From Zygnema circumcarinatum SAG 698-1b (Eukaryota > Plantae > Zygnematophyceae), in the NCBI GenBank assembly GCA_037447605.1, contig CM074810.1, positions 2,762,880 to 2,826,879 on the forward strand: DNA of 64,000 nt, read 5' to 3'. Position 1 is the stretch's first letter, and each line of letters begins with the position of its first letter. A model generated the notes under the pieces. It worked only from the letters and a program-made list of their open reading frames with translations, made no database searches and was not told the origin of the DNA. This document shows positions 9,406-44,700 of this stretch, piece by piece. Position numbers and translations under genes: made by a program.

Positions 9406-12171
9406 TCAGAAACTAAACCTTCTCGTAGCCGGCTTCTTCTTTTTCTCATAGTCTTTAATCAACGCCAGAGTGGAGTCCGCATCCAAGTGTCCTTGATCCG
9501 CCGCCTTCTTCAGAGCAACTTGCGCCATTTCTATATCTTTCGTTACGCCCCGTCCGTTCAAATAGCACGCTCCCATGTTAAACTGAGCGTCCTTGAACCC
9601 CTGCTCCGCCGACCTCTTGAACAACTCGAAAGCCCTCTTCTCATCCTTAGGAACCCCTTGTCCACTGTAGTAACACATCCCCAACCTGTTTTCAGCCTTA
9701 GCATAGCCTTGCTCTGCCGCTTTCGTGAGCATTCTCACTGCCTGTGCCAAGTCCTTTGTAATGATTCCGTTACCATTCGCAAATATGACGCCCAACTGAT
9801 ACTGGGCTTCTGCATGTCCTTGATTTGCCGCTTTCTGTAGCAGCTCTACGGCGCGTTTCATATCCCTTGCTACACCACCTCCAATCATGTAAAGCAGCCC
9901 CAAATTGCATAAAGCACCTGCATGACCGACATCTGCCGCCTTCGTATACATGACAGAGGCTCGTTTCAAATCCCGGGAAATGCCGGTTCCATGTTGATAA
10001 CAGCATCCTAACTCGAAGAGGGCATCCACGTGTTCCTTGTCAGCTGCTTTCTTGTAGAGCTCCACCGCCCGTGGAATGTCTCGACGGACTCCCAAGCCCT
10101 GCATGTAACACGATGCCAACTCAACTTGAGCGTCTTCCAACCCTTGACCGGCTGCCCTCTCCAACAGTTCAACAGCCTTTTCTAGGTCTATTTGCACCCC
10201 ATTCCCGGTCTTGAAACACAACCCTAATTTGCACTGTGCCTTCAAAACACCCTTCTCTGCAGCACGTGTGTAAATCTGAACGGCCTGTTCCATGTCCATG
10301 GGGACTCCTCTGCCGTTCTCGTAGCACAGACCTAAACGGAAAAGTGCGCCCAAATGCCCCTGATTCGCCGCATTCCTGTAAAAAGTCACCGCCTGCTCGA
10401 AATCCGGCACTAACCCAGCTCTCCCCTCCTCACATTGCACCCCCAAGCGATAGGACGAATCCCCTTGATCTCCACTTTCCACTACCATAGAGTTTCCCTC
10501 ATCCCTACTTTCAATTCTCCCAGAATTTTGTTGATCCCCATTACCCATACTTGCGGAATTATCTGCAGGTGTGTTCAGTTCAATAGAGCTGATTCTCCTC
10601 AAATCACTAATTTCCTTCGAGGACCGTCTCGAGCTCTTCGCCCGTTCTACGAGGCTACGAACACAAAAATTGTCAACAAGACGAAGATCTCCAGTTCTGG
10701 GGTCAGTTTCAAGTATTTCATTTGTTAATGGGTCGGTTCGGTGCCCTCCTTGAAACCACTCTTGAATGCATTTTCTGTCATATGTATGCCCGGAATCCAA
10801 CATGACAGGATCCTCCATAATGTGGAAACATATGGGGCAGATGAGCTCAGGAGAAGCGTTATCAGGGTCTGCCTCGTCGACTACATTGCCTGCCACTTTG
10901 GAGGCAAGAAGTCCAATAATCGCTTGAATGTAGTGCTCCTCTTCTGATTGCTTGTCGGATACAGCGCGCTCCATATCCGCCTTCATCTCCTCCATGAACA
11001 TTCCGATCTACACAAGAACATGCCATGCATAATGGGTGAGTTGATAAGTGAGCGATACCTCGACATCATGCATGGCCATAGGCCAATTATGCGCACAAAC
11101 ATGACAAAAAAGCATGACTGCACGCAATGCATATGTAATGTCGATCACACTCGACTGCACGTGGAGTTCAAAACCAATTCTCACTAAACTAAGACAACCC
11201 AACTCAAAAAAAGTCCACCTCCTTGAGAAAGAGCGGGTCCCACCTCCTGCTGCGTGACCTCCCTCTCCTCCAGAAGGCGGCTCACAAGCGCGTCCACCGA
11301 CTCCGGCTTGTCCACCGCCGCCCCCCCCAACAGCGCCGCATTCTGCGCCCTCTCCTCCTCCCCCGCCCTCNNNNNNNNNNCCCGCAACTCTCGAGGAGTC
11401 CATGGATGTTCTGAATCTTGGGATCACCCGTGAGTAGCTGCAAAATGATGAGGCCGAGGGCGTACACGTCGGCAGTGGATGTGAGCATTCCCTTCCGTGC
11501 ATGCTCCGGCGCCATGTACCTGTGAGGAGGCAAGGAAAGGGAGACCTTGGAGAGATGAATAAATCCCATCCCCACAAAGAAGTAGAGGAGGGCGGGAAGG
11601 AGAACTGCTGAAGCGGCAAGAAAGCAGATTGGAATATGACGTACCCGGGAGTGCCTCGGAAATTGCGGGTTTTGACTGTTCCCTCAAACAACCTAGCGAG
11701 CCCCATGTCTGCCAGTTTGGAGGTGAGGTTCCCGCCCAATAGCACATTCTCCGGCTTCATATCGCAATGGAGGAGGTTCTTCTTATGCATGAACAGCAGA
11801 GCGGACGCCATCTCGTAGCATATTCGGATGCGGTCCGCCCAACCAAGGGGGGGATACTTGGCAGCAGGGCCTTTCAGGCGGTCCTGGAGGCTCCCTCCGC
11901 TCATCAGCTCACTCACAACGCAGCGCGCTTCGGGGCTCCATCCCATGAACTGCACAATGTGGGGATGGCGCAGCCGGCTTAAAGCCGCCACCTCCTCCTC
12001 GAACCCCTTCAAGGGGCCGCTCTCATGCAGCCTCTTCACCGCCACAGGGGTGCCGAACAGCAGTCCTCTGTAGACCGATCCAAAGGCTCCTTTTCCGAGC
12101 AGGTTTGTGTCGGAGAAGCTGTCGGTGATCTCCGCCATAAGGCTTTCCGGGAAGGTATCAGGCATTGCCAT
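9406..12171 (-). CDS. Paralogue 1: Ser/Thr kinase - [gap] - helical linker - U-box - short linker - 9 Sel1 repeats (exons 12171-11645, 11519-gap-11244, 11007-9406)
   Basis: Kinase motifs GKGAFG, VAVK, HCDMKPENVLL, LADMGLAR, GTPG|YMAPE; U-box [40 protein letters not shown]; nine ~36-aa Sel1 units (AxxxLGxxYxxGxGVxxDxxxAxxxyxxAA). GT-AG junctions are in phase. A 10-N gap at 11371-11380 hides the middle. Confidence 0.85.
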
Positions 12172-12540
12172 TCCGGCTTCGCAGTGAGAGGGAGGGAGAG
12201 AGAGAGAGAGAGTTTGGTATTTATAAGGCGGCCGCCTGCCTTATCTCTAAACTCAACACTTGAGAAATTTCTGAGCTCCGGGCTGAGGTCAGCGGGACAC
12301 CGCGAACTTTCTGTTCCCGCCCCACAGATTTGAGTCACTTTAGAACAAAACCAATGCAGGTCCAAGAGAGTCCAATCTGTTGGATTTGGAAGACGATAAG
12401 CTTTTGTTTGCCAAAGTTCACTTGCAGTATAAAAACAACCTTAAGCCACCTTCTAAATGTAGAAGCACTATCCACAGCGCTGTTTCGCCATGCCAGGCCC
12501 CTCTGTATGCTATGACATTCAAGACATCAGTCGTCTGCCG

Positions 12541-12582
12541 TCCAATGTCCAATGTCCAATGTCCAATGTCCAATGTTCAATG
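12541..12582 (+). repeat. (TCCAATG)n heptamer tandem, ~6 units, upstream of paralogue 1
   Basis: tccaatgtccaatgtccaatgtccaatgtccaatgttcaatg. Confidence 0.85.
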
Positions 12583-14073
12583 CTCATAGCCACGTGCTTG
12601 CAGACATGGTCGGTTCCTATCATTCGATGTCAGTAAACAAAGCCATAAGCAGAACCCCTCATTCTCAGAGGGAGCTGAACCCTAAACCTTCGTTTCGGCC
12701 ATACCTGAAACGCAAGCCGACAACTCTGCATTCGTTCCGAAGGAGTCGACCTCTGTATTGACCTTCGGCGCGTAACCCGCATTCCAGGGACTCTGAAATC
12801 CGCCCCGTAACCCTGAACCCTAAATATCAAGGGCTGAAGAACCACTTCCGTTGTGCTCCATGCTTCCTCATCTCCCTCTCTCCCTCTCTCCCCCTCTCTC
12901 TCCCTCTATGTCTCGTCTCTCTCTCCCTTCCCCCCTCTCCTGTCTCCGTCTCTCACCCTCTCTCTCCCTCTCCGCCCTCTCCCTCTCTCCCTCTCTCCCC
13001 CTCTCACTCTCCCTCTCCCCCCTCTCCCTCTCTCCCTCTCTCCCCTCTGTCCCTCTCTCCCTCTCCCCCTTTCTCTCCCTCCGTCCCACACTCGCTCCCT
13101 CTTCCCCCTCTCCCTCTCCCAGGACCCCTCCCACTCTCTCCCTCCGGAAAAGCCACGGGCACACAGTACTGCAAACAGTACTGCAGTTAGTACTGTAGTA
13201 CTGTAAAGTTATAGTACCGATTTCGGGCAGACTGAATTTCAGCAAACCGCATTTTTACGGTCCCATTTTTCCTTTTTCCGATTGTTACTTCCTACATCCT
13301 AACGGTTCACATTCGCAGCAATCAATAATCAGAATCAGTAAGTTGTACCTCGAACTATTGTCCTTAACAGTACATGTTTCGAATACATTCTCTCTTCTTC
13401 GTTACTTTTAGGGTGCACCCCATTTTCAGAAAACGGAGTGTGTGACCGCAAAACGCGGGCAGTAGAAAATTTAGCGTCACGCTTGGTCACGCAGGGTCTC
13501 TGGAGGTCAACGGGTGCCGTACGGCGGTTTGGCGTGTTCAACACGTTTCACGTCCTCCGTGGCGCCATTTGCATACGTGACACCAACGTGGCGTGACGTG
13601 ACCTGACGTGGTGGGCCATGCTGGACTTGTCTTACGTGGCGAGCATTGATTGGCTTAGACTGGGCCATGTCATTTTCATGACACCTGTCATCCGACGTGT
13701 GCAGTTTACGACCGCTCGATGGACCGCAGCCCATTCGATCGAACGTTTCGTTTGCCGCGACCGCTAGGCACCGTATACGACAAACGAATGCACGAAAAAA
13801 TGGATGGTACGGTCGGCGGATGCGGCTTGCCACAGCCATTTCAAATACAAAGTGCATTGAACTCACGATGTCGAGGCCATCAACATGGACAAAAGCAACA
13901 GGTGGAACCACGAAAAACTGGCCGCAAAGGACCTAAGCACAATACAAAGAAGCTAAGAGAGGAAAATTACGACTAGACGCACAACGCAGCCCCTCGAAGC
14001 AGCCGCGAAGGTCACCGATGTGCGGCACTTCGCGAGGAGGGAGCGGCGGAAGGCCACCGACACGGTCGCTAAC

Positions 14074-14121
14074 AACCGCAACCGCAACCGCAACCGCAAC
14101 CGCAACCGCAACCGCAACCGC
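14074..14121 (+). repeat. (AACCGC)8 microsatellite
   Basis: Eight direct hexamer copies. Confidence 0.9.
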
Positions 14122-15228: not shown

Positions 15229-17858
<2,630 letters not shown>

Positions 17859-20060: not shown

Positions 20061-23000
20061 TCATGGCCAACTGAGCATTCTTCTTCCCGGCGTTCTTCGT
20101 ACCGCATAGTCTTTGATCAACGCCAAAGTGGACTCCGCATCCAAGTGTCCTTGATCCGCCGCATTCTCCAAAAGAACTTGCGCCATTTCCATGTCTTTCG
20201 TTACGCCTCGTCCGTTCAAATAGCACGCTCCCATGTTAAACTGAGCGTCCTTGAACCCCTGCTCCGCCGCCTTCTTGTACAATTCAACAGCCCTCTTCTC
20301 ATCCTTAGGAACCCCCTTTCCAGAGTAGTAACACATTCCCAACCTGTTTTCAGCCTTAGCATAGCCTTGCTCTGCCGCTTTTGTGAGCATTCTCACTGCC
20401 TGTGCTAAGTCCTTCTTAATGAAACCGTCACCGCTTGCAAATATCACGCCCAACTGATACTGGGCTTCTGCATGTCCTTGATTTGCCGCTTTCTGTAGCA
20501 GCTCTACGGCGCGTTTCATATCTCTTGCTACACCACACCCGATCATGTAAAGCAGCCCCAAATTCAAAAGAGCACCTGCATGCCCGAAATCTGCCGCCTT
20601 TTTATACATGAAATGGGCTCGTTTCATGTCGCGGTAGACGCCGGTTCCATGTTGATAGCAGCATCCTAACTCGAAGAGGGCATCCACGTGTTCCTTGTCA
20701 GCTGCTTTCTTGTACAGTTCCACCGCCCGTGAAATGTCTCGACGGACTCCCAAGCCCTGCATGTAACACGATGCCAACTCAGCTTGAGCGTCTTCCAAAC
20801 CTTGATCGGCTGCCCACGTCAGCAGCTCCACAGCCTTTTCTAGGTCTATTTGCACCCCATTCCCGGTCTTGAAACACAATCCTAATTTGCACTGTGCCTT
20901 CAAAAAACCCTTCTCTGCAGCACGTGTGTAAAGCTGAACGGCCTGTTCCATGTCCTTGGGAACTCCTCTTCCGTTCTCGTAGCACAGACCTAAACGGAAA
21001 AGTGCGCCCAAATGCCCCTGATCCGCCGCATTCCTGTAAAATATCACCGCCCCCTCTACATCCGGTCCTAACCCATGTATCCCCTCCTCACATTGTACCC
21101 CGGAGTGATAGGCAGAATTCCCCTGATCTCCACTTTCCACCACCATTGAATTCCACTGATCCCCACTTTCCACTACCATAGAATTCGCCTGATCCCAACT
21201 TTCCATTCTGCCAGAGTTCCGTTGATCCCCACGTTCCGTTCTTCCGGAAAACCCACTTTCCATTGTCCGTGAATTCCGTGGATTCCCATTTTCCACTCTC
21301 CCAGAATTCCGTTGACTCTCGTTTTCCATTCTTCGAGAATTCCGTTTCTCCCCACTTCATTCTCTCAGAATTTGCCTGATTCCCACTATCCATTCTCCCT
21401 GAAACCCGATGATCTCCAGTTTCCATTCTCCCAGATAGCCGTTGATCCCCATTTTCCAATCTCCCAGAATCCTTTGAAGATGTGTTTGGTTGAATGGAGC
21501 TGTTACTTGTCAGATAACTGATTTCCGTTGACCAGCTAGAGTTCCGTGCCCGTTCTCCAAGAGTACGGATAAAGATATTGTCACGAAGACGAATTTCTCC
21601 AGTTCTGGGGTCAGTTTCAAGAATTTGTTTGGTCAAGGGGTCTGTTCGGTGCCCTCTCCTAAACCAAACTTGAATGCATTTTCGGTCATACGTATGGCCA
21701 GAATCCAACATGACAGGGTTCTCCATAATGTGGCGGCATATGGGGCAGATGAGATCAGGAGACACGTCATCAGCGACTGCCACTTTGGATTCATTGTCTG
21801 CCATTTTGGAAGCAAGAAGTCCAATAATCGAATGAATGCAATGCTCCCCTTGTGATTGCTTGTCAGATACAGCGCCCTCCACTTCCGCCTTCAACTCCTC
21901 CAAAAAAATTTTGACCTGTGCGACGCCATGCATAAGGGATGAGTTCATATGTGTCGANNNNNNNNNNNNNNNNNNNNNNNNNNNNNNNNNNNNNNNNNNN
22001 NNNNNNNNNNNNNNNNNNNNNNNNNNNNNNNNNNNNNNNNNNNNNNNNNNNNNNNNNTCAAGACTCGGCGAGCCGCCCTGTCCCTCCACGCAGTGCAGCG
22101 CCACGTGGACAACTGCCTCTGTGTGGTCGCGCCCCCACGCCCCTCCCCGCGGGTCCAGCCTCGCCATGAAGACAGCTGTCGCCTTCTCCAACTCGCGCTT
22201 CGGCTGAGCTGGCCCGCAGCCCTCGAGGAGTCCATGGATTTTGTGGATCCTTGGTTCGCCCGTGAGTAGCTGCAATATGGTGAGGCCGAGGGCGTACACG
22301 TCGGCAGTGGATGTGACCAATCCCGTTCGTGCGTACTCCGGGGCCATGTACCTGTGAGGAACCAGCAAAAGGTGACCTTGGGAGATGAGTAGATCCGCCT
22401 TTTATAAAGTTGTGTACTCACTATCAAAGCTCACCTGAACATGAACAAACTCGCGGAGGATGGACGAGCGGGAGAAATTGTCAGCGGAGGATGGCGGGAA
22501 GGAGAACTGCTGAAATGGCAAGAAAGCAGATTGGAATATGACGTACCCGGGAGTGCCTCGGAAATTGCGGGTTTTGACTGTTCCCTCAAACAACCTAGCG
22601 AGCCCCATGTCTGCCAGTTTGGAGGTGAGGTTCCCGCCCAATAGCACATTCTCCGGCTTCATATCGCAATGGAGGAGGTTCTTCTTATGCATGAACAGCA
22701 GAGCGGACGCCATCTCGTAGCATATTCGGATGCGGTCCGCCCAACCAAGGGGGGGATACTTGGCAGCAGGGCCTTTCAGGCGGTCCTGGAGGCTCCCTCC
22801 GCTCATCAGCTCACTCACAACGCAGCGCGCTTCGGGGCTCCATCCCATGAACTGCACAATGTGGGGATGGCGCAGCCGGCTTAAAGCCGCCACCTCCTCC
22901 TCGAACCCCTTCAAGGGGCCGCTCTCATGCAGCCTCTTCACCGCCACAGGGGTGCCGAACAGCAGTCCTCTGTAGACCGATCCAAAGGCTCCTTTTCCGA

Positions 23001-26351: not shown

Positions 26352-28786
26352 TCACTGTCTCCAACTGAACATTTTTGACGGCGTTTTTTTTTTCGCGTAG
26401 TCTTTGATCAACGCCAGAGTGGACTCCGCATCCAAGTGTCCTTGATCCGCCGCCTTTTGCATATAAAATCTCGCCCTTTCCATGTCTTTCGTTACGCCTC
26501 GTCCGTTCAAATAGCACGCTCCCATGTTAAACTGAGCGTCCTTGAACCCCTGCTCCGCCGCCCTCTTGTACAGCTCAAAAGCCCTCTTCTCATCCTTAGG
26601 AACCCCCTTTCCAGAGTAGTAACACATTCCCAACCTGTTTTCAGCCTTAGCATAGCCTTGCTCTGCCGCTTTTGTGAGCATTTCCACTGCCTGTGCCAAG
26701 TCCTTTTTAATAATTCCGTTACCATTCGCAAATATCACGCCCAAATGAAACTGGGCGTCTGCATGTCCTTTATTTTCCGCTTTTTGAAGCAACTCTATGG
26801 CGCGTTTCATGTCTCTCGTCACACCACTTCCGCTCATGTAAAGCAGCCCCAAATTGCAACAAGCACCTGCATGCTCGAAGTCCGCCGCTTTTTTATACAT
26901 GACAAGGGCTTTTTTCATATCGCGGGAAATTCCGGTTCCATGCTGATAGCAGCATCCTAACTCGAAGAGGGCATCCACGTGTTCCTTGTCAGCTGCTTTC
27001 TTGTACAGTTCCACCGCCCGTGAAATGTCTCGACGGACTCCCAAGCCCTGCATGTAACACGATGCCAACTCAACTTGAGCGTCTGCCAAACCTTGACCGG
27101 CTGCCCTCTCCAACAGTTCCACAGCCTTTTCTAGGTCTATTTGCACCCCATTCCCGGTCTTGAAACACAATCCTAACTTGCATTGTGCCTTCAAAACGCC
27201 CTTCGCTGCAGCACGTGTGTAAAGCTGAACGGCCTGTTCCATGTCCTTGAGGACTCCTCTTCCGTTCTCGTAGCACAGACCTAAACGGAACTGAGCGCCC
27301 AAATGCCCCTGATCCGCCGCATTCCTGTAAAAGGTCACCGCCTGCACTACATCCGGCGCTAACCCATCTAACCCCTCCTCACATTGTACCCCCAAGTGGT
27401 AGTACGAAGTGCCCTGATCCCCACTTTCCATTTTCCCAGAATTCCGTTGATCCCCACTTTCACCAACCTTAGAATTCCCCTTATCCCCATCTTTCATACT
27501 CGCAGAAGTCCGTCGATCCCCACTGTCCATTCTCTCAGAACTCCGTGAGTCTCCGCTTTCCGCTACCTTTAAATTCCCCCAATCCCCAGTTTCCATCCTC
27601 CCAGAACTTCGTGGGTCTCCGCTTTCCGCTACCTTCAAATTTCCCTGATCCCCACTTTCCATCCTTCCAGAATTCCGCTGACTCCCACCTTCCTTCCCTA
27701 TTCCCCCTGAATTCCACAGATCCCAATTTCCCAAACTCTCAGAACTCCCTTTACTTGTGTTCAGTTCAAAGGAGTTTTGGGAAACGGAGCTCTCATTTGT
27801 CACGTCGCTAAAGAACCCGTCTTGGTCCCCTAACCGATCTATGAGACTACGTACACAGATATTGTCGACAAGACGAACATTCCCGGTCGTGGGGTCGGTT
27901 TCGAGAATTTCTTTGGTTATGGGGTCATTTCGATTACCTCTTTTCAGCCAAACTTGAATGCATTTTCTGTCATATGTACGGCCGGAATTCACCATGACAG
28001 GGTCCTTCATAGTGCGGCGACATATGGGGCAGATAAGCTCCTCGTCCACTTTTGTCTCTTTGGCAGCAAGAAGTTCAATAATCGTTTGAATGTAGTGCTC
28101 TTCTTGTCGACTTTTCTCGGATATAGCACGTGCCTTCTCCGCCTTCAACTCCTCCATGAACCTTTCGACCTACGCAAGGACAAGCCACGAATAAAAGATC
28201 AATTTATCCTGCTGCCAAGCAGTCATACGGAATTCAAGCCCCAAACGCTGAAAACCAAACCAAGTCAATCTCCTTGAGAAAGAGCGGGTCCCACCTCCTG
28301 CTGCGTGACCTCCCTCTCCTCCAGAAGGCGGCTCACAAGCGCGTCCACCGACTCCGGCTTGTCCACCGCCGCCCCCCCCAACAGCGCCGCATTCTGCGCC
28401 CTCTCCTCCTCCCCCGCCCTCAACACGCGTCCCATCTCCTCCCTACTTAGCTCCCGCGCCAGCAGGAAGTCCTGCTCGCAGTGCGAAATGCAGAAATTGA
28501 TGTCCTTTATGTCCTCAGAGATCTGCTCGTGAAAGAGCAGGCGGTAGAGCACGCTCCGCTTGCAGCGCGCGGCCAGTTCTGTGGCGGAGTGCACGTGCTG
28601 CAGCAGGTCCTGCAGGACCTTCTCTTCCGGTAGGCGGCCCCTCTCCGCCATGCGCCCCTCCAGGAGGGAGGAGAGCCGCTCCACGCGCCCGCAGAGGAGG
28701 GCGCCCATTTGCCCATGTGACGTCACGTTGTCCCACGCACGCCGCAGGGCTCCCACCGCCTGGAAAATTGTAATCGCCGTGTCCAT
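26352..28786 (-). CDS. Paralogue 3: N-terminal four-helix-bundle-like domain - U-box - minisatellite linker - 9 Sel1 repeats; no kinase (exons 28786-28295, 28169-26352; ~769 aa)
   Basis: ATG directly after ccacag; phase-0 intron GAG|gtggga...cgtag|GTC; U-box [40 protein letters not shown]; uninterrupted Sel1 array homologous to paralogues 1 and 2. Confidence 0.87.
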
Positions 28787-30299
28787 CTGTGGAAAGGGGG
28801 AGTGGTGTGGGGAAGGGAATGAGAGAGGGAGAAGGGGAGGGAGAGGGGAGGAGGGGGAGGGGAGGAGGGGGGAAGGACGGGGAGGGGGAGGGGGCGGGGG
28901 AGGAGGAGGGGCAGGGGGAGGGGGAGGGGGAGGGGGAGGGAGAGGGAGGGGAGGGGAGGGGGAGGGGAGGGGAGGGGAGGGGAGGGGAGGGGGAGGGGGA
29001 GGGGAGGGAGGGGAGGGGAGGGGAGGGGGAGGGGAGGGGAGGGGAGGGAGGGGAGGGGAGGGGGAGGGAGGGGAGGGAGGAGGGAGGGGAGGAGAGGGAG
29101 GGGAGGGGAGGAGAGGAGGGAGTGAGAAAGGGAGAAGAAGCGGTGAAGGGAGGATGGGACAGGGGAGAGAGGGATAGAGGGAGATAGGGAGAAGAAACAG
29201 GAATGGAAAGACGAGGAGAGCAGGGAAAGAAGGGGAAATAGAGGCAACACGCAAGAAAGGGGAATGAGAAAGAGAGAAATGTAATGGATAATGCGACAGG
29301 TTACCAGAGGGGGAGAGAGACTGTGAGAGAGGCGAGGCGAGACGAGGATAGGTCGATCGTCACAGTACGAGGGGGGGAGCTTCGTAGCGCACGCATCGCG
29401 TCACGTATCGTCAGGGTATGTTACGTGACGAGACGTGACACCTGCGAGAAGCGGACATTTGCCGTACAAATTTCTGCTAAACGACGGCAAGGCATCCTCC
29501 GTGGGGGTTCCATGGAGCCGTTGATCGTCGTGTTCGACGCTTTCATGACATATATCAGGGACCGTTGTCCGACGTGGCTGCCACGTGTGCATTGAAGGAG
29601 AGTTCCACAAAACGTGGAGACTTGAAACAGGATTTGGCCAATCGTGTGTCGCCACGTTTCCACAAATATCCACGTGGATGCCATGGTGGCTCGCTGCCAT
29701 CGACCCGCCGTGACTGTCGTTTGGTGTGGGAACTCCCAGGATATTGGAATGCCATGTGGCAATCTCTGATTGGCTGTTGGTCAATATACTTGATTAGTAC
29801 TTTGGATTGCACGTTAGTAACAAAGTGGCACGTTTCGGAGTACTGTTTTTGGTTACAAAAAGCCGGTTAAGGTTTCGTGGTCAGTAATTTTGTCTGACAT
29901 GCCTTGACTTACTCCCAGACAAAGGGGAGGTCCCGGACAACTACAAAAATAGCATATTCGATGCATATGCGGACAAGGGAATCAAAATCTCGGTAAAGGT
30001 CCTTCCGGTGAAGGTTTTTGTGGCGCAGATTTTTCCTGTCCCGGTTCCGTACCGTATTCGTTAAAAACCCAGTTTGCTGGGAAAAACCCAGACCGGCTCC
30101 ATGTCGCAGTACGGTAGTCATTTTCGCCGTTCCGTTTTGTAAATTGTAAATCAAACTAGCGTCGGGTTTTTTGTACCCGTTTTTTCGGAACTAGATTCTC
30201 TGGATACTCGTTCCTTGTGACGAGTGTATGGAATTTTCGCATTCCCGTTAAACAGTTTTCTATGCTTGACAACTCTTATTCAGGCAGAACTGGACCATT

Positions 30300-31244: not shown

Positions 31245-34200
31245 ATGGCGCTGCGCCTCCTCGTGGAGAGCCTCTTCCTCTCGTCCCTACGGCGGGCCCC
31301 ACCCTCCTCCCCGGTCGCCCTCGTGGCACGGGCCAGTGCGCTGGCGACAGCTGTCCCCGCGGAGCCGCCCAATGCGGGCAGGGGAGGGCTGTCGGCGGCG
31401 GCGGTGGCGGCTGAATCGACGGTAGAGAATGGGGCGCGCAATGACTGGACACGTGGCGAAATCCAGGCCGTCTACGACTCGCCGCTGATGGACCTGCTCT
31501 TCCATGGGGTATGGGAGGGAGGGAGGGAGGGAGGGAGGGAGGGAGGGAGGGAGGAGGCAGTGAGAGGGAGGGAGGGAGGGAGGAGGCAGTGGGAGGGGAG
31601 GGAGGGACAGGGAGGGAGGGAGGGAGTGAGAGAAGGTGGGAGAGGGTGTGGGGGAGGAGAGGATGAGGGAGAGAAAAATGTGAAGGGATGTAAAGAAATA
31701 AAGAAAGAAAGCAAAGGAGAAGGAGAAGGAGAATATCGAAAAGAAAGAAAAGAAAGGGAGGGAAGGAATTCGGAGGCAGCCAGTCAATTTTTTTTGAGAT
31801 GATTTTGAATTATAAAATTAGTTATTCTGATTTCTGTGTAAATAATGTGGCCTTTTGACTGAGCGGCTGTGTTACTGACATGGAACTGCCGCATTGCATA
31901 GTTAAACAGTAGCATAGAAACTGTCTGAATTATTGACAACTGGCAGACTCGATGCGCATAGGGACTAAAGCCAAATACATTTCTTTCTTTCTTTTTTTTC
32001 TTTAAAACATCTTTCCAGAATACGCGGCTTTGTTTTCTTTTCTTCGTAGGTGGTAAAGACAGTTTAATTTAAAGAAGTAGAAAGAAAACTGTCAGTCAGA
32101 AACATGCGACTCCAAAGGCCCTGACCCTTTTTTTGACAATTTTAATTTTGGAGTGCGCACGGGCAAAAACTGGACGCTTTACATGCTTCGAAACTTCTGA
32201 GATCTATCTTTATTTACTTGTAGACAAAATGCACGGCCTTTAGGCACTCGACCGATGGATAGAAAAAAGAAAACAATCCTGCACCATGACCCTGAACCTC
32301 ATCCCCTGAACGCTCAAACCCTAAAACCCTCGAACTCTAACTCCCAACCCCTGAACACTTCAATTCCCATCCCTACCCCCATTACCTCCTTACTCTCCTA
32401 TCCTACACCATACACCCCTGCACTCCTACATCGTACACCCTGAACCCTAAAGCTTAAACACTAAACCCTACACCCTACACCCTACACCCTAAACCCTAAC
32501 CCTACACCCTAACCCTAAACCCTACACCCTGCACTGTACACCGTTAACCCTAAATCTTAAACCCTAAATCCTACATCCCAAACTCTAACCCTAAACCCTA
32601 CACCCTGCTCTTTACACACTAATCCCTAATTCCCTAACCCTAACCCTAAACCTAAACCCTAACCCTAAACCCTAAACCCTACACCCTACACTCCAAACCT
32701 TAAAATCTAAACCCGAAAACCCGAAACCCGAAACCCGAAACCCGAAACCCGAAACCCGAAACCCGAAACCCTAAACCCTACACTCTACACCCTACACCCT
32801 CCACCCTAAACCCTACACCCTCCACCCTAAACCCTAACCCTCCACCCTAAACCCTAACCCTCCACCCTAAACCCTACACCCTCCACCCTCCACCCTAAAC
32901 CCTAACTCTGAACCCTAAACCCTAAACCCTAACCCTAACCCTAATTTCCGGGGGGGGGGGGGGCAGGCGCGGGTGCACCGCGCGAAGCATCGGTTCCGCG
33001 AGGTGCAGCGGTGCACGCTGCTGTCCGTGAAGACGGGCGGCTGTACGGAGGACTGCTCGTACTGCCCGCAGTCCTCCAAGTACGCCACGCCCGTCGCGGC
33101 CTCCAAGATGCTCGCGGACGACACCATTCTAGAGGCAGCGAAAAAGGTAATACACATATATATATTTTTTTTTTGGAAAATTTTGGTGGCTTGCGATTTG
33201 CTTTGCACGGATAAGGATGATGTCCGTCTCCTTCGTTTTTTTTTGGGGGGGGGGGTTCTGTTCAACAAAGTTGGGGTAAGGTTGTTGTGTGTGTAAGCTT
33301 TATTTATTTTTTTATTTATTTGTTTATGTGATGTTGAATGCAGGCGAAGGAGGCAGGAAGCACTCGTTTCTGTATGGGAGCCGCGTGGCGGGACACTTTG
33401 GGCCGCAAAACTCAATTTCAGCGAATCTTGAACAATGTGACTGCCATTCGGTGGGTACTTTCTTAACCGTTTTTTCAAAGAATTAATAAATATGACTCGA
33501 CATATTGGAAATTCATGAAGTGGGTTTTGTGAGAAATTCAGCAAGTCCTTTATCTCTTTTTCCGAGAATTGTATTGCAGATCAATGGGTAGTTAGCTCCA
33601 GCATAAAGTATCATCCTTACATTCAATATCTCTACAATTTCCCAATTCTGAAAAATGGGTTTTGCGAAGCTATTCCAAACACGCTTATCGATACCTTAAT
33701 CTCCTTTTTCGGGTTTTGCGTTTTGTGGAAAATTTGGCAAAAATATAGAGCTATGGGTATGGAGGTTTGCTGCACTCTGGGAATGCTGGAGGAGCAGCAG
33801 GCCAAGCAACTGAAAGCCGCAGGACTGACTGCATATAACCACAATTTGGACACTTCGCGCGAATTCTATCCTTCAATTATCACAACAAGGTCCTATGATG
33901 AAAGGCTCCAAACGCTCGAACATGTTCGGAATGCAGGTCTCTCCGTCTGCAGCGGTGAGTCGACCCCCCTTTACAGACACCTCATGCAATGTATACATCA
34001 TAGAATATCGTATATACTATGTAGAATACTATCTATGCATCATTTGCATTTGTATGCGATGGAATTTGTACATTGCATATGTCATCTATCACATGTCATA
34101 TACCGTACAATGAACAGACTGAATCTCTTCTTCAACAGATTGGATTATTTGCTGAAGATTGAGCTCTTCATCCTCAAAAACGCACAAAATGTAGCCTTTC

Positions 34201-34802
34201 ATGTAGCCTTAGCCTCTTTACAATGACCCATATCATGCAAGCTGCAGATACCTACAATGCATACATACATTCATGCATGCATTTATGTACTAATCCTCCA
34301 ACTACCCCCTTTCATGAAAACGACAGGTGGCATCATCGGATTGGGCGAAGCCGAGGAAGACCGAGTGGGCCTCCTCCACACTCTCTCCACTCTTCCGGAA
34401 CATCCGGAAAGTGTTCCCATCAACGCCCTACTGGCTGTGAAGGGAACTCCTCTTGAGAAACAGGAGCCTGTCAAGTGGTGGGAGATGGTACGGATGATTG
34501 GTACGGCCCGAATAGTGATGCCCGGAGCCATGGTACGACTCAGCGCGGGAAGGGTCCATCTCTCGCAGGCGGAGCAGGCTCTCTGCTTTATGGCGGGTGC
34601 GAATTCGATCTTTACAGGAGAGAAACTTCTGACTACGCCGAACAATGATGAAGATTCGGACACTGAGATGTTTGAGAGGCTAGGGTTGGTGGCGAAGCCG
34701 CCCTCGTTCGGGGCGGGAGGGAGTACGACGGAGGTGGGAGAGAGGGAGGAGTGGGTGGGAGAGGAGGAGAAGGGGGAGGAGGTGAAGATGGCGGCGCAGT
34801 GA
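31245..34802 (+). CDS. BIO2: Biotin synthase (radical SAM), mitochondrial-type; exons 31245-31508, 32967-33146, 33344-33450, 33749-33954, 34327-34802 (410 aa)
   Basis: [40 protein letters not shown] (CxxxCxxC), [66 protein letters not shown]. The N-terminus is Arg/Ser/Ala-rich like a presequence. All introns are GT-AG and in phase. Confidence 0.97.
32435..32945 (+). repeat. Degenerate telomere-like array (CCCTAAA/CCCTAA/CCCTACA/CCCGAAA/CCCTCCA) in BIO2 intron 1
   Basis: About 500 bp of heptamer/hexamer variants, including a run of about 8 AAACCCG units. Confidence 0.9.
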
Positions 34803-35518
34803 GAGGGAGAGGGAGGAGAAGGAGCAGGGTGAAGGAAAAGGAAGAGGAGAGATGGAGACGGGAGAGAAAGGAGAGAGGGAGAGAGGGGGATGGGGTGAAG
34901 AGACCAAGACGGAGTGTGGACGAGGGGAGGAAGGATGAACAGAGCAAGTAGATAAAGAGCGGAAGTGAGAGAGGCAGAGCGGGAGGGAGGGAGGTTGAGA
35001 GGTGGATAAGGGTATAAGATATGTGAGCAGCCGCTTCACTTGTTCAGTTGTAGGATTCTGATTTGGAGTTCCAGAACGAACTATTCTTCTATTCTTTTGT
35101 AGAATTAGAAATTTCTGAATGCGGTTCGCGACTGCCGGTGTCCTCTGTGTTGGCGATGTGGCGGGATGAGAAACTCACATGGACGATTTTTGAGAACTCA
35201 CTTCGATTGGTCCAAATTTTACATAGACCCCTTGAAAGAGTGAAGTCCCTACCTGAGCGCATTTATCGTTTTGATTGACTTAGTTAGTGAGAGTGCTAAA
35301 CTAGTGCTAATAGACAAGTAATATGGGCCACACAAATTGTTTGTCCAAACAAATGTACTTGGATATATTTTTTTGCAAAGATGTGTAAACTGAAAATTTT
35401 GAAAAGAAAATATATTCTCGCTTGCCTATACTTTTTGACGAAGTGAACGGTGTCAACGATTCTTGGGCCGGCACTCCATCGAGACTGACGGCATCGGAAC
35501 GTGGCATCGGAGCGTGCT

Positions 35519-35925
35519 ATGCCATGTCACGCCATGCCATGCCATGCCATGCCATGCCACGCCATGCCACGCCATGCCAGGCCACGCCATGCCATGCCAT
35601 GCCACGCCATGCCGTGCCATGCCATGCCACGCCACGCCATGCCATGCCATGCCATGCCATGCCACGCCATGCCGTGCCATGCCATGCCACGCCACGCCAT
35701 GCCATGCCATGCCACGCCATGCCATGCCATGCCACGCCATGCCATGCCATGCCACGCCATGCCATGCCATGCCATGCCATGCCATGCAACGCCATGCCGT
35801 GCCATGCCATGCCACGCCACGCCATGCCATGCCATGCCACGCCACGCCATGCCATGCCATGCCACGCCATGCCGTGCCATGCCATGCCACGCCATGCCGT
35901 GCCATGCCATGCCACGCCATGTCAC
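35519..35925 (+). repeat. (GCCAT/GCCAC)n pentanucleotide satellite, ~400 bp
   Basis: Continuous 5-bp periodicity with GCCAC and GCCGT variants. Confidence 0.95.
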
Positions 35926-35986: not shown

Positions 35987-36052
35987 CGTGACGTGACGTG
36001 ACGTGACGTGACGTGACGTGACGTGACGTGACGTGACGTGACGTGACGTGAC
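35987..36052 (+). repeat. (GTGAC)n pentanucleotide, ~13 units
   Basis: Perfect cgtgacgtgac run. Confidence 0.95.
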
Positions 36053-37245: not shown

Positions 37246-38138
37246 AACTTAGCAGAGGTGGCCTTTAGGATTTGAAGCAGTTTCTAGTATTGTGAAGGAG
37301 TGTTCACAAACTGTTTATGTTCACACCGCTCTTCTCTGCATTTATGTTGAAGCATGGATGGCTTGGAGACTGAGAAAGCAATGCCGGTTTTCCGCGTCGG
37401 TTTGTTTCTTTGGTTTCTTTTTTAAATGACTCGTATTATACTTTTTCCCTTTCCTCTGGTTGAAGGCTTTTAGGGTTTTCGTCAAAGCTCAATAAGCATG
37501 GAGCGGGGCGAGAAAGTGATTAATTCAAACATCTACAGTGAGATTTACGGGCACTGGTCGACACCGCAGGTATTGTTTTGAAAAACTTCTTAAAGCGTAA
37601 AATTTACTAGGAAGATTTCACTCATACATATTTGACTTTAACTATTGGCTAAAAGCATATCTGCTTTCCAAAAAGCTCATTACCCATCTCCTCACCCACT
37701 GTCCCCCTCCCTTTTTTGGTTTTTTACTGCTTTTTTCAGAACACGAATTTCCCACCAGCCCTTCAAGCTGCACAACCTCCTCGGGCAGCTCCCCAAAATT
37801 TTTACCCTCCACCTCCTCCCTCCAGCCATCCATCATTGGAGCGTCCTTTGTTTTCTCATCTACCCGCATTTCAACCCTCTAAAAGGCTCTTGCAAATGTC
37901 CGCCACGAGGCTGAGGCCGGCGGAGTTCCATGGAGCCAACCTGCACAGTTTCAGTTTGGAGCGAACGGAGCAGCTTGGCACGGACCACCAGGTGGACCTC
38001 CCCCAGAATGGCTGGCAGGGATTGGGCCTCCCCCAGTTCTACCTCCACCGCGAGGGCCTTCATTTCACAGAACACTGCCTGTGAGAGGCTCTCACTGAGA
38101 GCTTCAACTTTTGGCCCGCCTCCTGCCAGCTGGCCTCC

Positions 38139-38628
38139 GCCAGGTGGACCTATGCCAGGTGGGCCTATTCTGACTAGCCCTAGGCCAGGTGGACCTATGC
38201 CAGGTGGGCCTATGCCAGGTGGGCCTATGCCAGGTGGGCCTATTCTGAATAGCCCTAGGCCAGGTGGACGTATGCCAGGTGGACCTATTCTGAATAGCCC
38301 AGGCCAGGTGGACCTATGCCAGGTGGGCCTATTCTGACTAGCCCTAGGCCAGGTGGACCTATGCCAGGTGGGCCTATGCCAGGTGGGCCTATGCCAGGTG
38401 GGCCTATTCTGAATAGCCCTAGGCCAGGTGGACGTATGCCAGGTGGACCTATTCTGAATAGCCCAGGCCAGGTGGACCTATGCCAGGTGGGCCTATTCTG
38501 AATAGCCTATGCCAGGTGGACCTATGCCAGGTTGGGCCTTTGCCAGGTGGGCCTATTCTGAATAGCCCTAGGGCAGGTGGACCTATGTCAGGTGGACCTA
38601 CGCCGGGTGGATCCGCACCAGGTGGTCC
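38139..38628 (+). repeat. 15-bp VNTR (GCCAGGTGGRCCTAT; PGGPM in frame) with a 164-bp higher-order duplication
   Basis: 38141-38304 is repeated at 38305-38468; tctgaatagccc(t)ag units are interspersed. Confidence 0.9.
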
Positions 38629-39211: not shown

Positions 39212-39534
39212 GTGAGTCTCTCCATCGATGTTCCAAACGTTACTGAGAGAGAGGGATGGGGAGGGGGAGGGGAAGGGGGAGGGGCAAGGGGAGGGAGAGG
39301 GGGAGGGGAGAGGGGGAAGGGGGAAGGGGGCAAAGGAAGGGGGCAAAGGAAGGGGGCAAAGGAAGGGGGAAAGGAAGGGGGAAATGGGTTTTCATTTTTT
39401 AATGTCGCTATTGTTGTTTGCCTTGGCAAGCGAGAGGTTGCATTGTAGTGAGAAGTCGACCATTTTTTTGTGCTTTGGAGATATTGCAAGAGATAATCAA
39501 AAAATTTGGAGTTTATTTGTCACATGTGATGAAT

Positions 39535-39937
39535 ATTCTTAAAGATGTATGTGTCAGCGCAGCAATTTTAGAGTCCCTTCTGAGGTGGTGAGATTCAGCA
39601 ATTAGTTGTGGGTCAGCATTTTTACAAGTCAGCATTTTTTAAGGCTTTATTTTCCCTTGTGCAAGCATTCAAGAACACTAAGGCAAAATGCATTGCAATG
39701 TCATTTACTGTTATATTAAAAATGTGCTTCAAGATAAGACACAATATAGCAATAAATGATATTACAATATTGATACATGCATTTTGCCTTGGTGTTCCTG
39801 AACGCTTGCACGAGGGAGGATAAAGCCTGAAGAATGCTGATTTGTAAATGCTGATTCGCAACTAGTTGTTGAATCTCATCGTCTCATAGGGGACTTTGAA
39901 ATTGTTGCGTTGACATTTCACATGCATCTTCAAGAAT
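39535..39937. mobile_element. Foldback/MITE-like element, ~400 bp, with ~170-bp imperfect terminal inverted arms
   Basis: The left arm attcttaaagatg...gagattcagcaattagttg...aaggcaaaatgcat pairs with the right arm atgcattttgcctt...caactagttgttgaatctc...catcttcaagaat. No TSD seen. Confidence 0.78.
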
Positions 39938-39950
39938 TGGTTCCTCACAG

Positions 39951-41762
39951 GTACATGGCCCCGGAGTACGCACGAACGGGATTGGTCACATCCAGTGCCG
40001 ACGTGTACGCCCTCGGCCTCACCATATTGCAGCTACTCACGGGCGAACCAAGGATCCACAAAATCCATGGACTCCTCGAGGGCTGCGGGCCAGCTCAGCC
40101 GAAGCGCGAGTTGGAGAAGGCGACAGCTGTCTTCATGGCGAGGCTGGACCCGCGGGGAGGGGCGTGGGGGCGCGACCACACAGAGGCAGTTGTCCACGTG
40201 GCACTGCACTGCGTGGAGGAGGACAGGGCGGCTCGCCCGAGTCTTGAAAACGATGTTGTGCCTCGCTTGCAGAGGGCAGCGGAGAATGCAAAGGAGGGGG
40301 AGCAACTAGATTCAGCAGTATCAGCACAAACGCCTGCACCCGAAAACGATGGAAAAAAAATGAATGAGAGCAGTCCCCTGGAGGAACTTGAGGATAAAGC
40401 TGAGGAATTAGGCCCTGCCACGGTTCTCACCCAAGGTGATTTGAATGAAGTCGGGTCTCTTGTGAAGGAAGTGATGGCTGTGTGGGAGAATGTGAAGTCA
40501 CATCGAAAGAAAGGCAAGGTGCTGAGCGAGACCGTGAATATCGTGTACGAAGCGATGAAGAGTAGAAGTTACCAAGGGAGTGACTTGGTAACTGAAAAAC
40601 TTGCAATACGCCAGTTTCAGTCTACCATGAAGAGGGCAATCGCTGTTGCAGAAAAATGCAATCAGAGCACTACGTACCGACTCCTGTTTTCTAACAACAT
40701 TTCAGCTGAACTTCTACAAATACAAACTGAGTTGAACACCTTCCAGCTTCCTTCCTTTCTTCTGGTGGTGAGAGAAGCGGGGAAAGGCGGTCAACCACCT
40801 TCTCCGAGTCAAAAAACCAATCTACTAGACACTCAATCCGATCCAATTGCTGAGGTGCGTTCCGGGTCGGGCTTGGAGAAGCGCTGTGATGGCATTCTGT
40901 TAGTTTCCGGGAGGGGTTTGGAAGTTTATGCATGTGCAGATTCACCTGTCGCTGTCTGTGATTGACGTGCCTGCCGGGATAAAGGCTGCTTCGTCAACAG
41001 ATTGAGGAGAGATTTGAACCGTCCCCCAGTTAGGAAATTGTCTTCGAATGTTGCAAAGTACATATCAGACCCTGAGTCCCTATAGCCTGAAGTTTGTGTG
41101 TATTTGCATTCCTTATGATATTCGACATGCTGACTTGTGATTCCCCTCCTTGCCTTGACCGTCAGGTCGAAACCCTTAAACAAGAGATCAAGGATAAGGC
41201 TGAGGCGCAGTTCCGTGTAGCTGTGCAATACGCTAACGGAAATGGAGTCCCCAAAGACATGGAACAGGCCGTTCAGTTTTATAGGCGCGCTGCAGAGAAT
41301 GGCCATCGTGATGCCCAGTACTATTTAGGTTGGTGCTACGCGAATGGAGAAGGAGTCCCCAAAGACATGGAACAGGCCGTTCAGTTTTATAGGCGCGCTG
41401 CAGAGAATGGCCATCCTGAGGCCCAGTACAATTTAGGTTGGTGCTACGCGAATGGAGAAGGAGTCCCCAAAGACATGGAACAGGCCGTTCAGTTTTATAG
41501 GCGCGCTGCAGAGAATGGCCATCCTGAGGCCCAGTACAATTTAGGTTGGTGCTACGCGAATGGAGAAGGAGTCCCCAAAGACATGGAACAGGCCGTTCAG
41601 TTTTATAGGCGCGCTGTAGAGAATGGCAGTTATCACGCGCATGACAAGTTAGGTGACTGCTACAGGAAAGGAGAAGGAGTCCCCAAAGACATAGAAAAGG
41701 CCGTTCAGTTGTATAGGATGCAGGAATTTGCATGGTGCAGCGGCCAACCAATCCCGTGCTGA
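39951..41762 (+). pseudogene. Paralogue 4: kinase C-lobe only - four-helix-bundle-like domain - near-identical Sel1 repeats; no U-box (exons 39951-40767, 41166-41762; decayed last repeat to ~41950)
   Basis: The exon starts cag|G TAC ATG (phase 2) and is nearly identical to paralogue 2 kinase exon 2; no N-lobe exon was found upstream. The phase-0 intron lies in an equivalent position to that in the other paralogues. An out-of-frame remnant KDAQFNVGVCFL...GHLKAEST follows the stop. Confidence 0.75.
41247..41720 (+). repeat. 108-bp near-perfect coding tandem repeat (Sel1 unit), ~4.4 copies
   Basis: GTCCCCAAAGACATGGAACAGGCCGTTCAGTTTTATAGGCGCGCTGCAGAGAATGGCCAT... recurs every 108 nt. Confidence 0.95.
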
Positions 41763-44700
41763 GGCTGCAAATATGTTTCGGAGACTAACAGTGGTGACAG
41801 GGGATCAAGGACGCTCAGTTTAACGTGGGAGTGTGCTTTTTGGACGAACGAGGCATGACGAAAAACGTGGAAAGAGTGAGAGAGTATATGCAGAGGGCGG
41901 CGGGTCAAGGCCACTTGAAGGCGGAGTCCACTCCGGCGTTGATCGATAAGCCCTTTTGGAGGTGGTGTATTCAGATTGTGTTTTAGGGCAGGCTTGAAGA
42001 AAGAGTGAGGGTTTTTATCGTCGCTGAATGTGAAGTCCCTGTAGGGGCATACCTTGATAAAGTCACAAGGAATTTTACCATTATTTATTTATAATATAAC
42101 TGAATGTTGGGCTTTGCCCGCTAGCCAGGCTAAGACTTAGACGTAGTGGGAGGAGGTGAGGTAAGGTCAGAGCTTCGAGGCTCGTGACTTTATCAAGGTT
42201 GTCGAGCGTGGTGTTTACTTTACAAAGTGACCCTACCAAATGGTCGACTGCTCTGGAAAAATATATAAAAAAATGTGGGTAATTGCATTCGCTTTCCATC
42301 ACTTTCCGTCCACGCTCAAAATTGTCAGTCAGATTCAGTTCCACTTCCAGTCCTGATTCAGTTCAGTTTCACTTCCTCTTGCACTTTCAATGAAACATTC
42401 AATTTATTTCATGAGTGTTGTCTGAGTCCCTTTCCCGTTTCTGAGAAGCCNNNNNNNNNNNNNNNNNNNNNNNNNNNNNNNNNNNNNNNNNNNNNNNNNN
42501 NNNNNNNNNNNNNNNNNNNNNNNNNNNNNNNNNNNNNNNNNNNNNNNNNNTCGCACGCGCGCGGCCTGCTTCAGACCTCGCTGATCGCCGCCGCGACTTC
42601 TCCAAACGCCGCTCGCGAACTGCCGCTGGGCCCTCGTGACTAAATGGGCCAAGCCGCCAAGGCGCTGGAGTCCGCTTGTCGTTGTGTCGGTTGCTGTCAC
42701 GGGCGGAAGTGGGCGCCAAGGAAGTCTGAAATAACCATGGCGACGCCACGTTGACGCGATTTCCGGCCAAGATTTTCTTCGCGACGCCCATTTCTTTTGC
42801 GCAACAAAATCGCATGGGTTAGGCGTTCTTTTAGTAAACCCCACGGTCAATCTTCGCAACGTTGACCCGTTGACTTAGCACAGTTGACTTCCGTTCGGTT
42901 CGGCTTCTAGGTTCGGGGCACGAAGGATTTTAGTACTTAGTAACCTCGATTCTCGTAAAACTAAAAACTCGATATTCGTAACATTTTGTTAAGTCTGACA
43001 CGCCCTAGTGACACAAATACGTTGGGATCGATATGGTCACTACAACGCGAGTACACTGTAGACTGTACGGACAACAAAAGTCTGACACTTGCTCGCTAAT
43101 TCACAAAGTTCGGACGCACTATGAACTTCCGTAATTGGCATCGTTTCGCTAACCGCCATTCGCGACGGTATCAAAATTTTCTTAGACCGCCGCATCATGC
43201 TGACCTGGATTAGAATGAGGAGATAATGGGGAGCGGGTATCAATCTTCACGAATATGCGGTCAAAGTCAGCACGGGAAACCACGGGAGTTGGCTATCGCT
43301 ATCAATCACTAGTCAATCAATCTATCAATCCATCAAAAGTCTCCATCAATTTTCTTGTCGCTATTCGCTAATCGTGATGACTAGAATACGCAGACCTCAC
43401 CTTTCCGTGTTGACCAACCGAACTGTACCGCCACACGGTACGGAGCGGGCTCCGGCGCGGTACAGTAGTGGCCCCCTCTCTCTCTCTCTCTCACTCTTGC
43501 TCCTATTGGTGCCGTACATTTAGTTACACGAGCTCCTTGTTGTTCCTCACATATACCGTACGATTTTGAAATTGGAAAATTGTGTTCTCACACCTTTTTT
43601 GTCTACACACAGACCTTTTTTCACCGGGCAGGTTCTATTTAAAAAAAAAAGGATTAAAAACGAAAATGATTTTTTTACACCTTTTTTGTCTATACACACT
43701 CCATTTTCCGTCGGGCAGATTTGATTTTAGAACCAAAAGGTTTTTAAACCCTAAAAACGCATTATAATTCCACAAGCATTGCCAGACACATCCGGACAAT
43801 CATCAGACATTGCGGCATTGAGGGATGTTTAACTTTGCGACCTCTTTGAGCCTCTTCGTCTCTTTGACCCAATACGAGAAGTGTTTGCTGGCCTGTAACG
43901 TTTACTTGCCATTCAAACAATGAAAAAATGCTAAAATTTGTGCTTTCTCCCTTTTTTTTTCACCGAAAATCGATGACCGAGNNNNNNNNNNCCAAGTAAT
44001 GAGGAGTCAGATCCTACGGTGGAGGACGCGGATGGAGATAAGGCTAAGGCGGATCTGACGGCAATGATGTGTTGGATCCGTGCAAGCCTACGAGGATCCG
44101 ACGGCGCGAGATTAGGATTGGGATAAGGGTCTTGCAAGGCGTTGCATGTGCGGCTGTGACGTGACAATGTCACTAATGGCGCCATATTGTATTTAAGGCT
44201 TAGATTGTTTGGTAGAATTAACCTTCTCGTGACTCACAGTGGGGTGAGGCTATCTTGCTTAGGGCCTAGGAGATAGAGGGAAGAGTTCAGCTTGTAGTGG
44301 GTGGTTTATTCACGTAGCTTGAGAGGAGGTGCTTGAAGCTTGGCGTTAGTGTTGTCAAGTTGTATTCCAACTTTATCTTAAGGAGTTTTAGGCTGGTGGC
44401 TTTCTCCTTACATTTTCATATTTCCGCTGAGTTGTTCTCTTGCATTTAGTGTGCTTTGTGTGATTGAGCAATTCATTGAAGATGTCGAGTTCTACCCAGG
44501 GTAGAGGAGAAGTGGCAGCTGTTGGTGCAGTGACTCCTCCATTGCTGCCGGCTTCTCCACTCGCATCACCTTCCATCGGAGTTCGCGTTCCAATCGATGA
44601 TGACATTTCCCAAACTCTCACTTGCACTCATAGCCCATTTTACTCACAGAGTGAACCTCACAGAATATGCACAGCGGAATAACAGAGAGAAAAGGATAGG

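Follow-up and report, generated by a model that had tools for sequence, protein, structure and literature searches.

U-box ubiquitin ligases work together with receptor-type kinases that phosphorylate them, a pairing central to signaling in plant immunity and development. In land plants, receptor-type kinases phosphorylate plant U-box (PUB) ligases in a relay exemplified by SRK–ARC1 and BAK1–PUB12/13. The class II PUBs (PUB12/13/14/15, SPL11, and ARC1 type) carry a four-helix UND/MCAfunc domain directly before the U-box and armadillo (ARM) repeats at the C terminus, and class IV PUBs, or RLCK-IXb proteins, carry an RLK/Pelle-family kinase N-terminal to the U-box in a single polypeptide. Here, we describe four related genes, P1 to P4, from the streptophyte alga Zygnema circumcarinatum SAG 698-1b, in which a single gene apparently unites both partners of this pair and Sel1 repeats form a solenoid in place of the usual armadillo repeats. 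The window, which is the whole 64-kb stretch of DNA that was analyzed, is eukaryotic, harbors introns, has a G+C content of ≈50%, and is interrupted by 12 assembly gaps; the closest homologs, the kinase matches, and the atlas neighbors are all streptophyte. We conclude that this array is genuine and represents a variant of the PUB ligase family not described before, and sequence comparisons lead us to favor the view that it constitutes a lineage-specific branch of the PUB E3 ubiquitin ligases, a kinase-regulated E3 family. The conserved core likely runs from a UND/MLKL-like four-helix bundle and a helical linker through the U-box and a Ser/Gly-rich linker of 11-residue repeats to a nine-repeat Sel1 solenoid; this plan would, on balance, correspond to that of the PUB-ARM ligases, with Sel1 substituting for ARM.

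P1, P2, and P3 lie in tandem on the minus strand, and P4 is inverted and found on the far side of a biotin synthase gene. A tblastn comparison with the whole window returns two kinase N-lobes, three kinase C-lobes, four Sel1 arrays, and two P3-type bundles, one of which is partial. Pfam analysis of the long open reading frames (ORFs) identifies a U-box followed by nine Sel1 repeats in P1 and P3 and detects both domains in P2 as well, although in separate frames; the U-box core motifs (CPI..., DPV, G.TY.R..I..W, and T.P.T) are readily visible in an alignment of P1 to P3, and P4 has no U-box. The domains assigned in an earlier note on this DNA (a non-RD RLK/Pelle kinase, an MLKL/RPW8-type four-helix bundle, a U-box, and Sel1 repeats) are upheld by Pfam, self-comparison, and fold searches. 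Its claim of four different assemblies stands in part: P3 lacks the kinase and P4 lacks the U-box, as Pfam and tblastn confirm (P4 also has no N-lobe upstream), but P1 and P2 probably differ only because assembly gaps hide the four-helix bundle (see below).

P3 provides the clearest view of the core. Exon 1 (28295–28786, minus strand; ATG at 28786, donor at 28294) encodes the UND/MLKL-like bundle (DUF7792, E 0.0039), and exon 2 (26352–28169, minus strand) encodes a coiled coil, the U-box (E 1.3e-12), the linker of 33-nt repeats, and nine Sel1 repeats (E 1.8e-90) up to the stop codon; the spliced model is 769 residues long and stop-free. The same order of parts, namely an N-terminal MLKL_N-like bundle, helical linker, U-box, linker, and Sel1, is found in Klebsormidium nitens KFL_007190040 (P0123, 687 residues) and in a transcript-derived homolog from K. 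subtile (P0121, 686 residues), which are collinear with P3 throughout, from initiator Met to C-terminal tail. The P3 model aligns with these proteins from residue 1 to the C terminus (BLASTP E 5.7e-23 for the bundle and U-box and 3.2e-28 for Sel1), and its predicted start aligns with their N termini. The predicted junction VTQQE/VERF aligns with VTAQDVAQY of the Klebsormidium proteins, which is the sole independent support for this junction. The Klebsormidium proteins are ≈28% identical to P3, have fewer Pfam Sel1 repeats, and lack both the linker of 11-residue repeats and a kinase fusion; the K. nitens locus is single-copy with no paralog nearby, in contrast to the array in Zygnema. A kinase gene beside the K. 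nitens homolog was considered as an unfused partner and rejected, as the similarity is weak and generic (41–51% over ≈45 residues). Because its alignment with the single-copy Klebsormidium proteins spans the full length, P3 appears to be the kinase-less form of a conserved core and not a product of loss. Immediately 5′ of the P3 start codon, and sharing its frame (28790–29360, minus strand), an (AGGGG)n-type simple repeat reads as 190 proline-rich codons; this repeat may mark the breakpoint of the absent kinase part.

These comparisons also bear on novelty. The earlier note knew of no described family with this architecture, and our literature search recovered no paper on a kinase/bundle/U-box/Sel1 combination, with queries for U-box plus Sel1 in plants and algae returning only bacterial-effector and endoplasmic reticulum-associated degradation papers. 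The bundle–U-box–Sel1 core itself, however, is already present in the K. nitens and K. subtile proteomes, under no name beyond "hypothetical" or "U-box domain-containing." When the whole U-box/Sel1 exon was used as the query of a protein search, Sel1 proteins dominated the output and the best 120 matches included no U-box protein; the region of the coiled coil and U-box alone had no match at E ≤0.001 in this collection, which seemingly does not contain this genome's own proteins.

The relationship to the PUB ligases is most evident in the region preceding and including the U-box. The K. nitens protein aligns with an MCAfunc–U-box–ARM PUB (E 6e-11) over a stretch that covers the latter half of its bundle and the U-box, and the MCAfunc, U-box, and ARM combination is reported to be ancestral among streptophytes, being present from charophytes onwards (PMC8049495); the bundle–U-box unit is thus best read as the UND–U-box unit of PUBs in which Sel1 replaces ARM. 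As in the class II PUBs, the four-helix domain in P3, and its visible end in P1, directly precedes the U-box. The C-terminal region differs, as there is no Arm match here and nine Sel1 repeats occupy that position; furthermore, the kinase partner of class II PUBs acts in trans in land plants, whereas in P1 and P2 the kinase appears to belong to the same gene. P1 and P2 resemble class IV PUBs and RLCK-IXb proteins in the predicted placement of the kinase before the U-box and in kinase family, which is supported by solved relatives. They differ from class IV PUBs in having the four-helix bundle between kinase and U-box and a Sel1 array after the U-box, and no N-terminal USP domain is seen. Finally, U-box+Sel1 pairs are common in protists, and ESM Atlas clusters contain U-box+Sel1 and RING+Sel1 proteins from diatoms, haptophytes, and some viruses; a U-box is paired directly with Sel1 repeats in 13 of the 100 nearest clusters. 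These proteins are 190 to 300 residues long and have neither bundle nor kinase, such that the likeness is that of the domain pair.

Individual assignments of the bundle are weak, with Pfam returning DUF7792 for P3 at the E-value given above and MLKL_N for P4 at E 0.19. The nearest ESM Atlas clusters, obtained with language-model features, are MCAfunc, DUF7792, MLKL_N, and RPW8, and a four-sequence bundle profile searched against the PDB finds the MLKL N-terminal domain in six of seven matches (E ≈0.02). A model of the P3-type bundle (pLDDT 68) is closest in fold to MCA1/2 and to the UND of PUB12/13/14/15 and SPL11 (TM 0.58–0.65 across the class II UNDs and 0.63–0.64 for PUB12/13), followed by RPW8 and MLKL. 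The P4-type bundle (pLDDT ≈88, first 105 residues) is closest to the ADR1-L/NRG1 CC-R domains, RPW8.2, and the MLKL executioner domain. The two types are ≈25–27% identical to one another. We therefore assign the bundle as UND/MCAfunc/MLKL-like from the agreement of these methods, no single fold E-value being significant, and the MLKL/RPW8-type fold proposed in the earlier note is borne out by atlas features, PDB profile, and fold matches alike. The further proposal that the bundle is a death effector fares less well: the fold is shared with known executors, but the four-helix bundle and U-box pair corresponds to the UND(MCAfunc)–U-box unit of PUB-ARM ligases, and the bundle need not, therefore, be a death effector. 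Animal and plant MLKL and the RPW8/CC-R N termini of helper NLRs share the fold of the bundle, and MLKL also combines a bundle with a kinase-fold domain in one protein. The order in MLKL is bundle, brace, and C-terminal pseudokinase; here, the kinase comes first, retains its catalytic residues, and is thus not a pseudokinase, there is no brace–pseudokinase arrangement and no NB-ARC, and a U-box follows the bundle. With the P3 bundle as query, exhaustive searching by phmmer returned two matches only, of which one, from K. subtile, is relevant; the other, a fish protein, was judged spurious. The P4-type bundle core (40435–40750, plus strand) is basic, with an isoelectric point (pI) of ≈9.1, and the P3-type core (28442–28786, minus strand) is near neutral (pI ≈6.5).

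Kinase N-lobe exons are found only in P1 (12171–11645; ATG at 12171, donor GG/GTACGT at 11644; Pkinase E 1.3e-28, profile positions 3–164) and P2 (23073–22547; Pkinase E 2.5e-29, 99.4% identical to P1 by tblastn), both on the minus strand. In both genes, joining the N-lobe donor GG/GTACGT to the C-lobe acceptor restores the GTPGYMAPE motif. All of the expected kinase residues are retained (VAVK, E, the non-RD HCD, KPEN, DMG, and GTPGYMAPE), and the top matches among solved structures are IRAK1, a lectin receptor kinase, Pto, BRI1, and IRAK4. The domain is predicted to be a cytosolic, non-RD kinase of RLK/Pelle type, within the IRAK/RLK group. P2 starts with MGMPDT, in which Gly2 and Thr6 would be consistent with an N-myristoylation signal, and P1 starts with MAMPDT; the identity between P1 and P2 ends right at the ATG (23073 versus 12171).

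An assembly gap interrupts each of these genes at the same point of the architecture. In P1, the gap at 11371–11380 separates kinase subdomain IX from the final third of the bundle. The preceding piece (11381–11519, minus strand) holds the first 47 codons of the C-lobe exon and encodes subdomains VIII and IX, and the piece directly after the gap (11244–11370, minus strand; donor GAG/GTGGGA at 11243) encodes the last 42 codons of the bundle. The latter matches the bundle end and intron start of P3 (28421–28256) with 97.6% nucleotide identity over 166 nt and 100% amino acid identity over 50 aligned residues. The last exon of P1 (9406–11007, minus strand) is one unbroken ORF that encodes the coiled coil, U-box (E 2.9e-13), a short linker, nine Sel1 repeats (E 7.5e-83), and the stop codon. 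In P2, the gap at 21958–22057 separates the end of the kinase from the 3′ end of an intron, of which 42 nt and the acceptor follow the gap. The C-lobe exon before it (22058–22351, minus strand) contains two compensating indels (−2, −1) and is 98.4% identical to the C-lobe of P4, which in P4 runs on in one frame into a bundle. The last exon of P2 (20061–21915, minus strand) encodes the coiled coil, U-box (E 3.6e-12), a long linker of 33-nt repeats, and, in another frame, Sel1 (E 2.9e-83). A 1-nt deletion in a linker repeat unit near 21363 splits the U-box frame from the Sel1 frame, and no intron able to bypass this deletion was found; the Sel1 region nonetheless remains open over 431 codons.

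As the flanks of the gaps are near-identical to P3 and P4, both P1 and P2 probably encode kinase, four-helix bundle, U-box, and Sel1 in this order. The gaps sit exactly where the bundle is expected, and the architectures first listed for P1 and P2 are thus incomplete rather than different. With P3 and P4 as templates, the missing sequence is estimated at ≈0.7 kb (≈230 codons) in P1 and ≈0.7–0.9 kb (≈200 codons plus part of the intron) in P2, and the breaks probably arose where the assembler could not tell near-identical bundle sequences of the paralogs apart. Exact-product look-ups for exon ORFs from P1, P2, and P3, made to find other assemblies spanning the gaps, returned no record. P1 and P2 agree in strand, order, and spacing of a leading kinase and a U-box, although both are broken by gaps, and P4 places kinase and bundle in one ORF.

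P4 is a truncated, rearranged copy and possibly a pseudogene. Its first exon (39951–40854, plus strand; donor GAG/GTGCGT at 40855) lies in an ORF spanning 39841–40962 and encodes the kinase C-lobe (Pkinase profile positions 156–203 only) and the second, divergent type of bundle (≈40435–40750). The Sel1 exon follows (41166–41762, plus strand), encoding a short coiled-coil remnant and five Sel1 repeats (E 6.3e-62), with a stop codon at 41760; the Sel1 part is built from near-identical units of 108 bp (TRF period 108, 4.5 copies, 92% matches), and the spliced model is 499 residues long. Past the stop, a relic of the ancestral last Sel1 repeat (41798–41944, plus strand) is out of frame and 69% identical at the amino acid level to the last repeat of P3; a search for a splice that would bring it in frame found none. 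A phase-0 intron had been noted before the last exon in all four genes. The homologous site (GAG/GT...AG/RTC) is predicted from the sequence of P1, P3, and P4, but P2 shows the acceptor only, with the donor falling inside the gap.

Nucleotide identity within the array is mosaic. The N-lobes of P1 and P2 are 99.3% identical, an identity that extends 60 nt into the intron, and the C-lobe of P2 is 98.4% identical to that of P4 versus 85% to that of P1. The U-box regions of P1 versus P2 and of P1 versus P3 are 74–77% identical, as compared with 89% for Sel1 in the same pairs, and synonymous divergence (dS) is ≈0.2 in Sel1 and 0.37–0.55 in the U-box region. The juxtaposition of tracts of 97.6–99.3% identity with tracts of 74–89% confirms the earlier suggestion of local duplication with segment exchange; this mosaic pattern and the contrast in dS fit gene conversion or unequal exchange between copies, and mis-joins at gaps are possible. 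The array may thus have evolved by tandem duplication with gene conversion or unequal exchange among its members. The ratio of nonsynonymous to synonymous substitution (Ka/Ks) is 0.30–0.39 in Sel1, 0.43–0.53 in the coiled coil and U-box, and 0.4–0.8 in the linker. Linker variation is mainly in the copy number of the 33-nt (11-residue) unit, which is repeated ≈2 times in P1 and ≈7–9 times in P2 (21252–21470, minus strand) and P3 (27415–27693, minus strand). Sel1 is the most conserved module among P1 to P3 (87% amino acid identity), its substitutions are scattered with no hypervariable face, and it is under purifying selection. This conservation argues against the NLR-like diversification of a Sel1 sensor that the earlier note proposed, as it is the opposite of what is found in the leucine-rich repeats of NLRs.

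Sequence words sampled from P1 and P3 were looked up in sequencing runs. RNA run X16 contains 0.79 of the sampled P1 words, with exons making up 0.85 of the P1 stretch, and 0.21 of the P3 words; the fraction of P3 words common to P1 and P2 is 0.14. P1 is therefore probably expressed, and P3 is probably expressed little or not at all in the X16 sample; the small excess of P3 words over 0.14 is about what the hidden P3-like bundle of P1 would be expected to add. Several independent DNA runs contain P1-specific words (0.84–0.88), and a mostly different set contains P3-specific words (0.57–0.81).

We propose that the U-box would recruit an E2 and that the Sel1 solenoid would hold a conserved substrate or partner. 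The attached kinase may control whether the ligase is active or which substrate it takes, through phosphorylation of the bundle, the linker, or the substrate; the kinase–U-box fusion would then bring together in cis what land plants do with a separate receptor-type kinase that phosphorylates a PUB ligase. If confirmed, the fusion would provide Rosetta stone-type evidence for the kinase-to-PUB relay in this lineage as well and would offer a tractable single-protein system in which to examine the role of the UND/MLKL-like bundle and the distinction between a regulatory and an executor bundle beside a kinase.

Several considerations weigh against this reading of the array as a kinase-regulated ligase family. 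P1 and P2 are not continuous across their gaps, such that the scaffold joins are assumed; the splice junctions and a single kinase-to-Sel1 mRNA are predicted, and ligase and kinase activities are deduced from motifs. The kinase is placed at the family level (IRAK/RLK), with RLCK IXb membership a candidate assignment. The modeled bundle resembles the cell-death executors MLKL, RPW8, and CC-R in fold just as well, with all fold-search E-values >0.01, and a family that grows in tandem while its copies exchange segments is a pattern more typical of defense genes than of housekeeping ligases. A rival reading, which builds on the earlier note, takes the array to encode a family of receptors for immunity or cell death that lack a nucleotide-binding domain, in which Sel1 senses a ligand, the U-box and kinase act as the switch, an MLKL/RPW8-like bundle damages the membrane, and the genes diversify as do NLR clusters. 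Such a role is possible, and it draws on a non-RD kinase, a tandem array with mosaic exchange, a bundle that shares the fold of MLKL, RPW8, and the NRG1/ADR1 CC-R and that is basic in its P4 type (pI ≈9), the kinase, TIR, and caspase fusions that are common among Sel1 homologs, and the fusion of Sel1 repeats to nucleotide-binding domains in NLR-like genes of Klebsormidium (PMC7145615). None of the exons and ORFs of the four genes gave a Pfam match to NB-ARC or NACHT. We nevertheless regard this receptor reading as a minority possibility, and an unlikely one, not supported by the tests that were run: the Sel1 arrays are the most constrained module rather than the most variable, the bundle occupies the UND position of PUB ligases, which are not known to be executors, the Klebsormidium homolog is single-copy with no paralog nearby, two of the four shuffled forms are probably gap artifacts, and, of the copies, one is frameshifted and another truncated. 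A more speculative extension, which we judge improbable, is an NTPase-free streptophyte immunity module in which Sel1 would serve as guard or binder of a target, phosphorylation by the cis kinase and ubiquitination through the U-box would determine the threshold, and an MLKL/RPW8-like bundle, in two deeply diverged types, would be released to damage membranes; if true, these genes would be a functional analog of helper NLRs and MLKL.

The frameshift and the truncation also feature in a quite different explanation, that of decay combined with assembly noise, according to which P1 alone is functional, P2 to P4 are recent partial duplicates or pseudogenes, some of the identical tracts near gaps are mis-joined contigs of a collapsed repeat family, and the modular variety has no biological meaning. 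The P2 frameshift, the indels at the edge of the P2 gap, the absence of N-lobe and U-box from P4 together with its out-of-frame relic repeat, and the termination of the 97.6–99.3% identity tracts at or near gaps are all in keeping with it, as is the low recovery of P3 words from X16, in which P3 may be silent. We consider this account doubtful. P3 retains a clean 769-residue frame, intact splice signals, and the ancestral architecture, Ka/Ks is <0.4 in all pairs, the stop-free P2 Sel1 included, and the P1- and P3-specific words occur in mostly different sets of independent DNA runs. A PUB-type ligase core with Sel1 in place of ARM, to which a kinase is joined in P1 and P2, is the reading that we prefer.

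Outside of the four genes, ORFs between the paralogs harbor no Pfam domain, the biotin synthase excepted. This gene (32919–34802, plus strand) lies between P3 and the inverted P4 and contains a radical-SAM motif at 33054 and a BATS domain (E 5.5e-27). An interstitial array of ≈74 copies of the plant-type telomere unit (CCCTAAA/TTTAGGG) at 32437–32944 is degenerate (78% matches) and ends just upstream of it. Two Ty1/copia-type polyprotein copies with gag, integrase, and reverse transcriptase motifs are found at ≈45000–50000 on the minus strand and are broken by several assembly gaps. Finally, two simple repeats lie upstream of P4: a (TGCCA)81 microsatellite at 35515–35921 and, at 38124–38611, a minisatellite of 33 copies of a 15-nt unit, the plus strand of which reads as a Pro/Gly-rich ORF.

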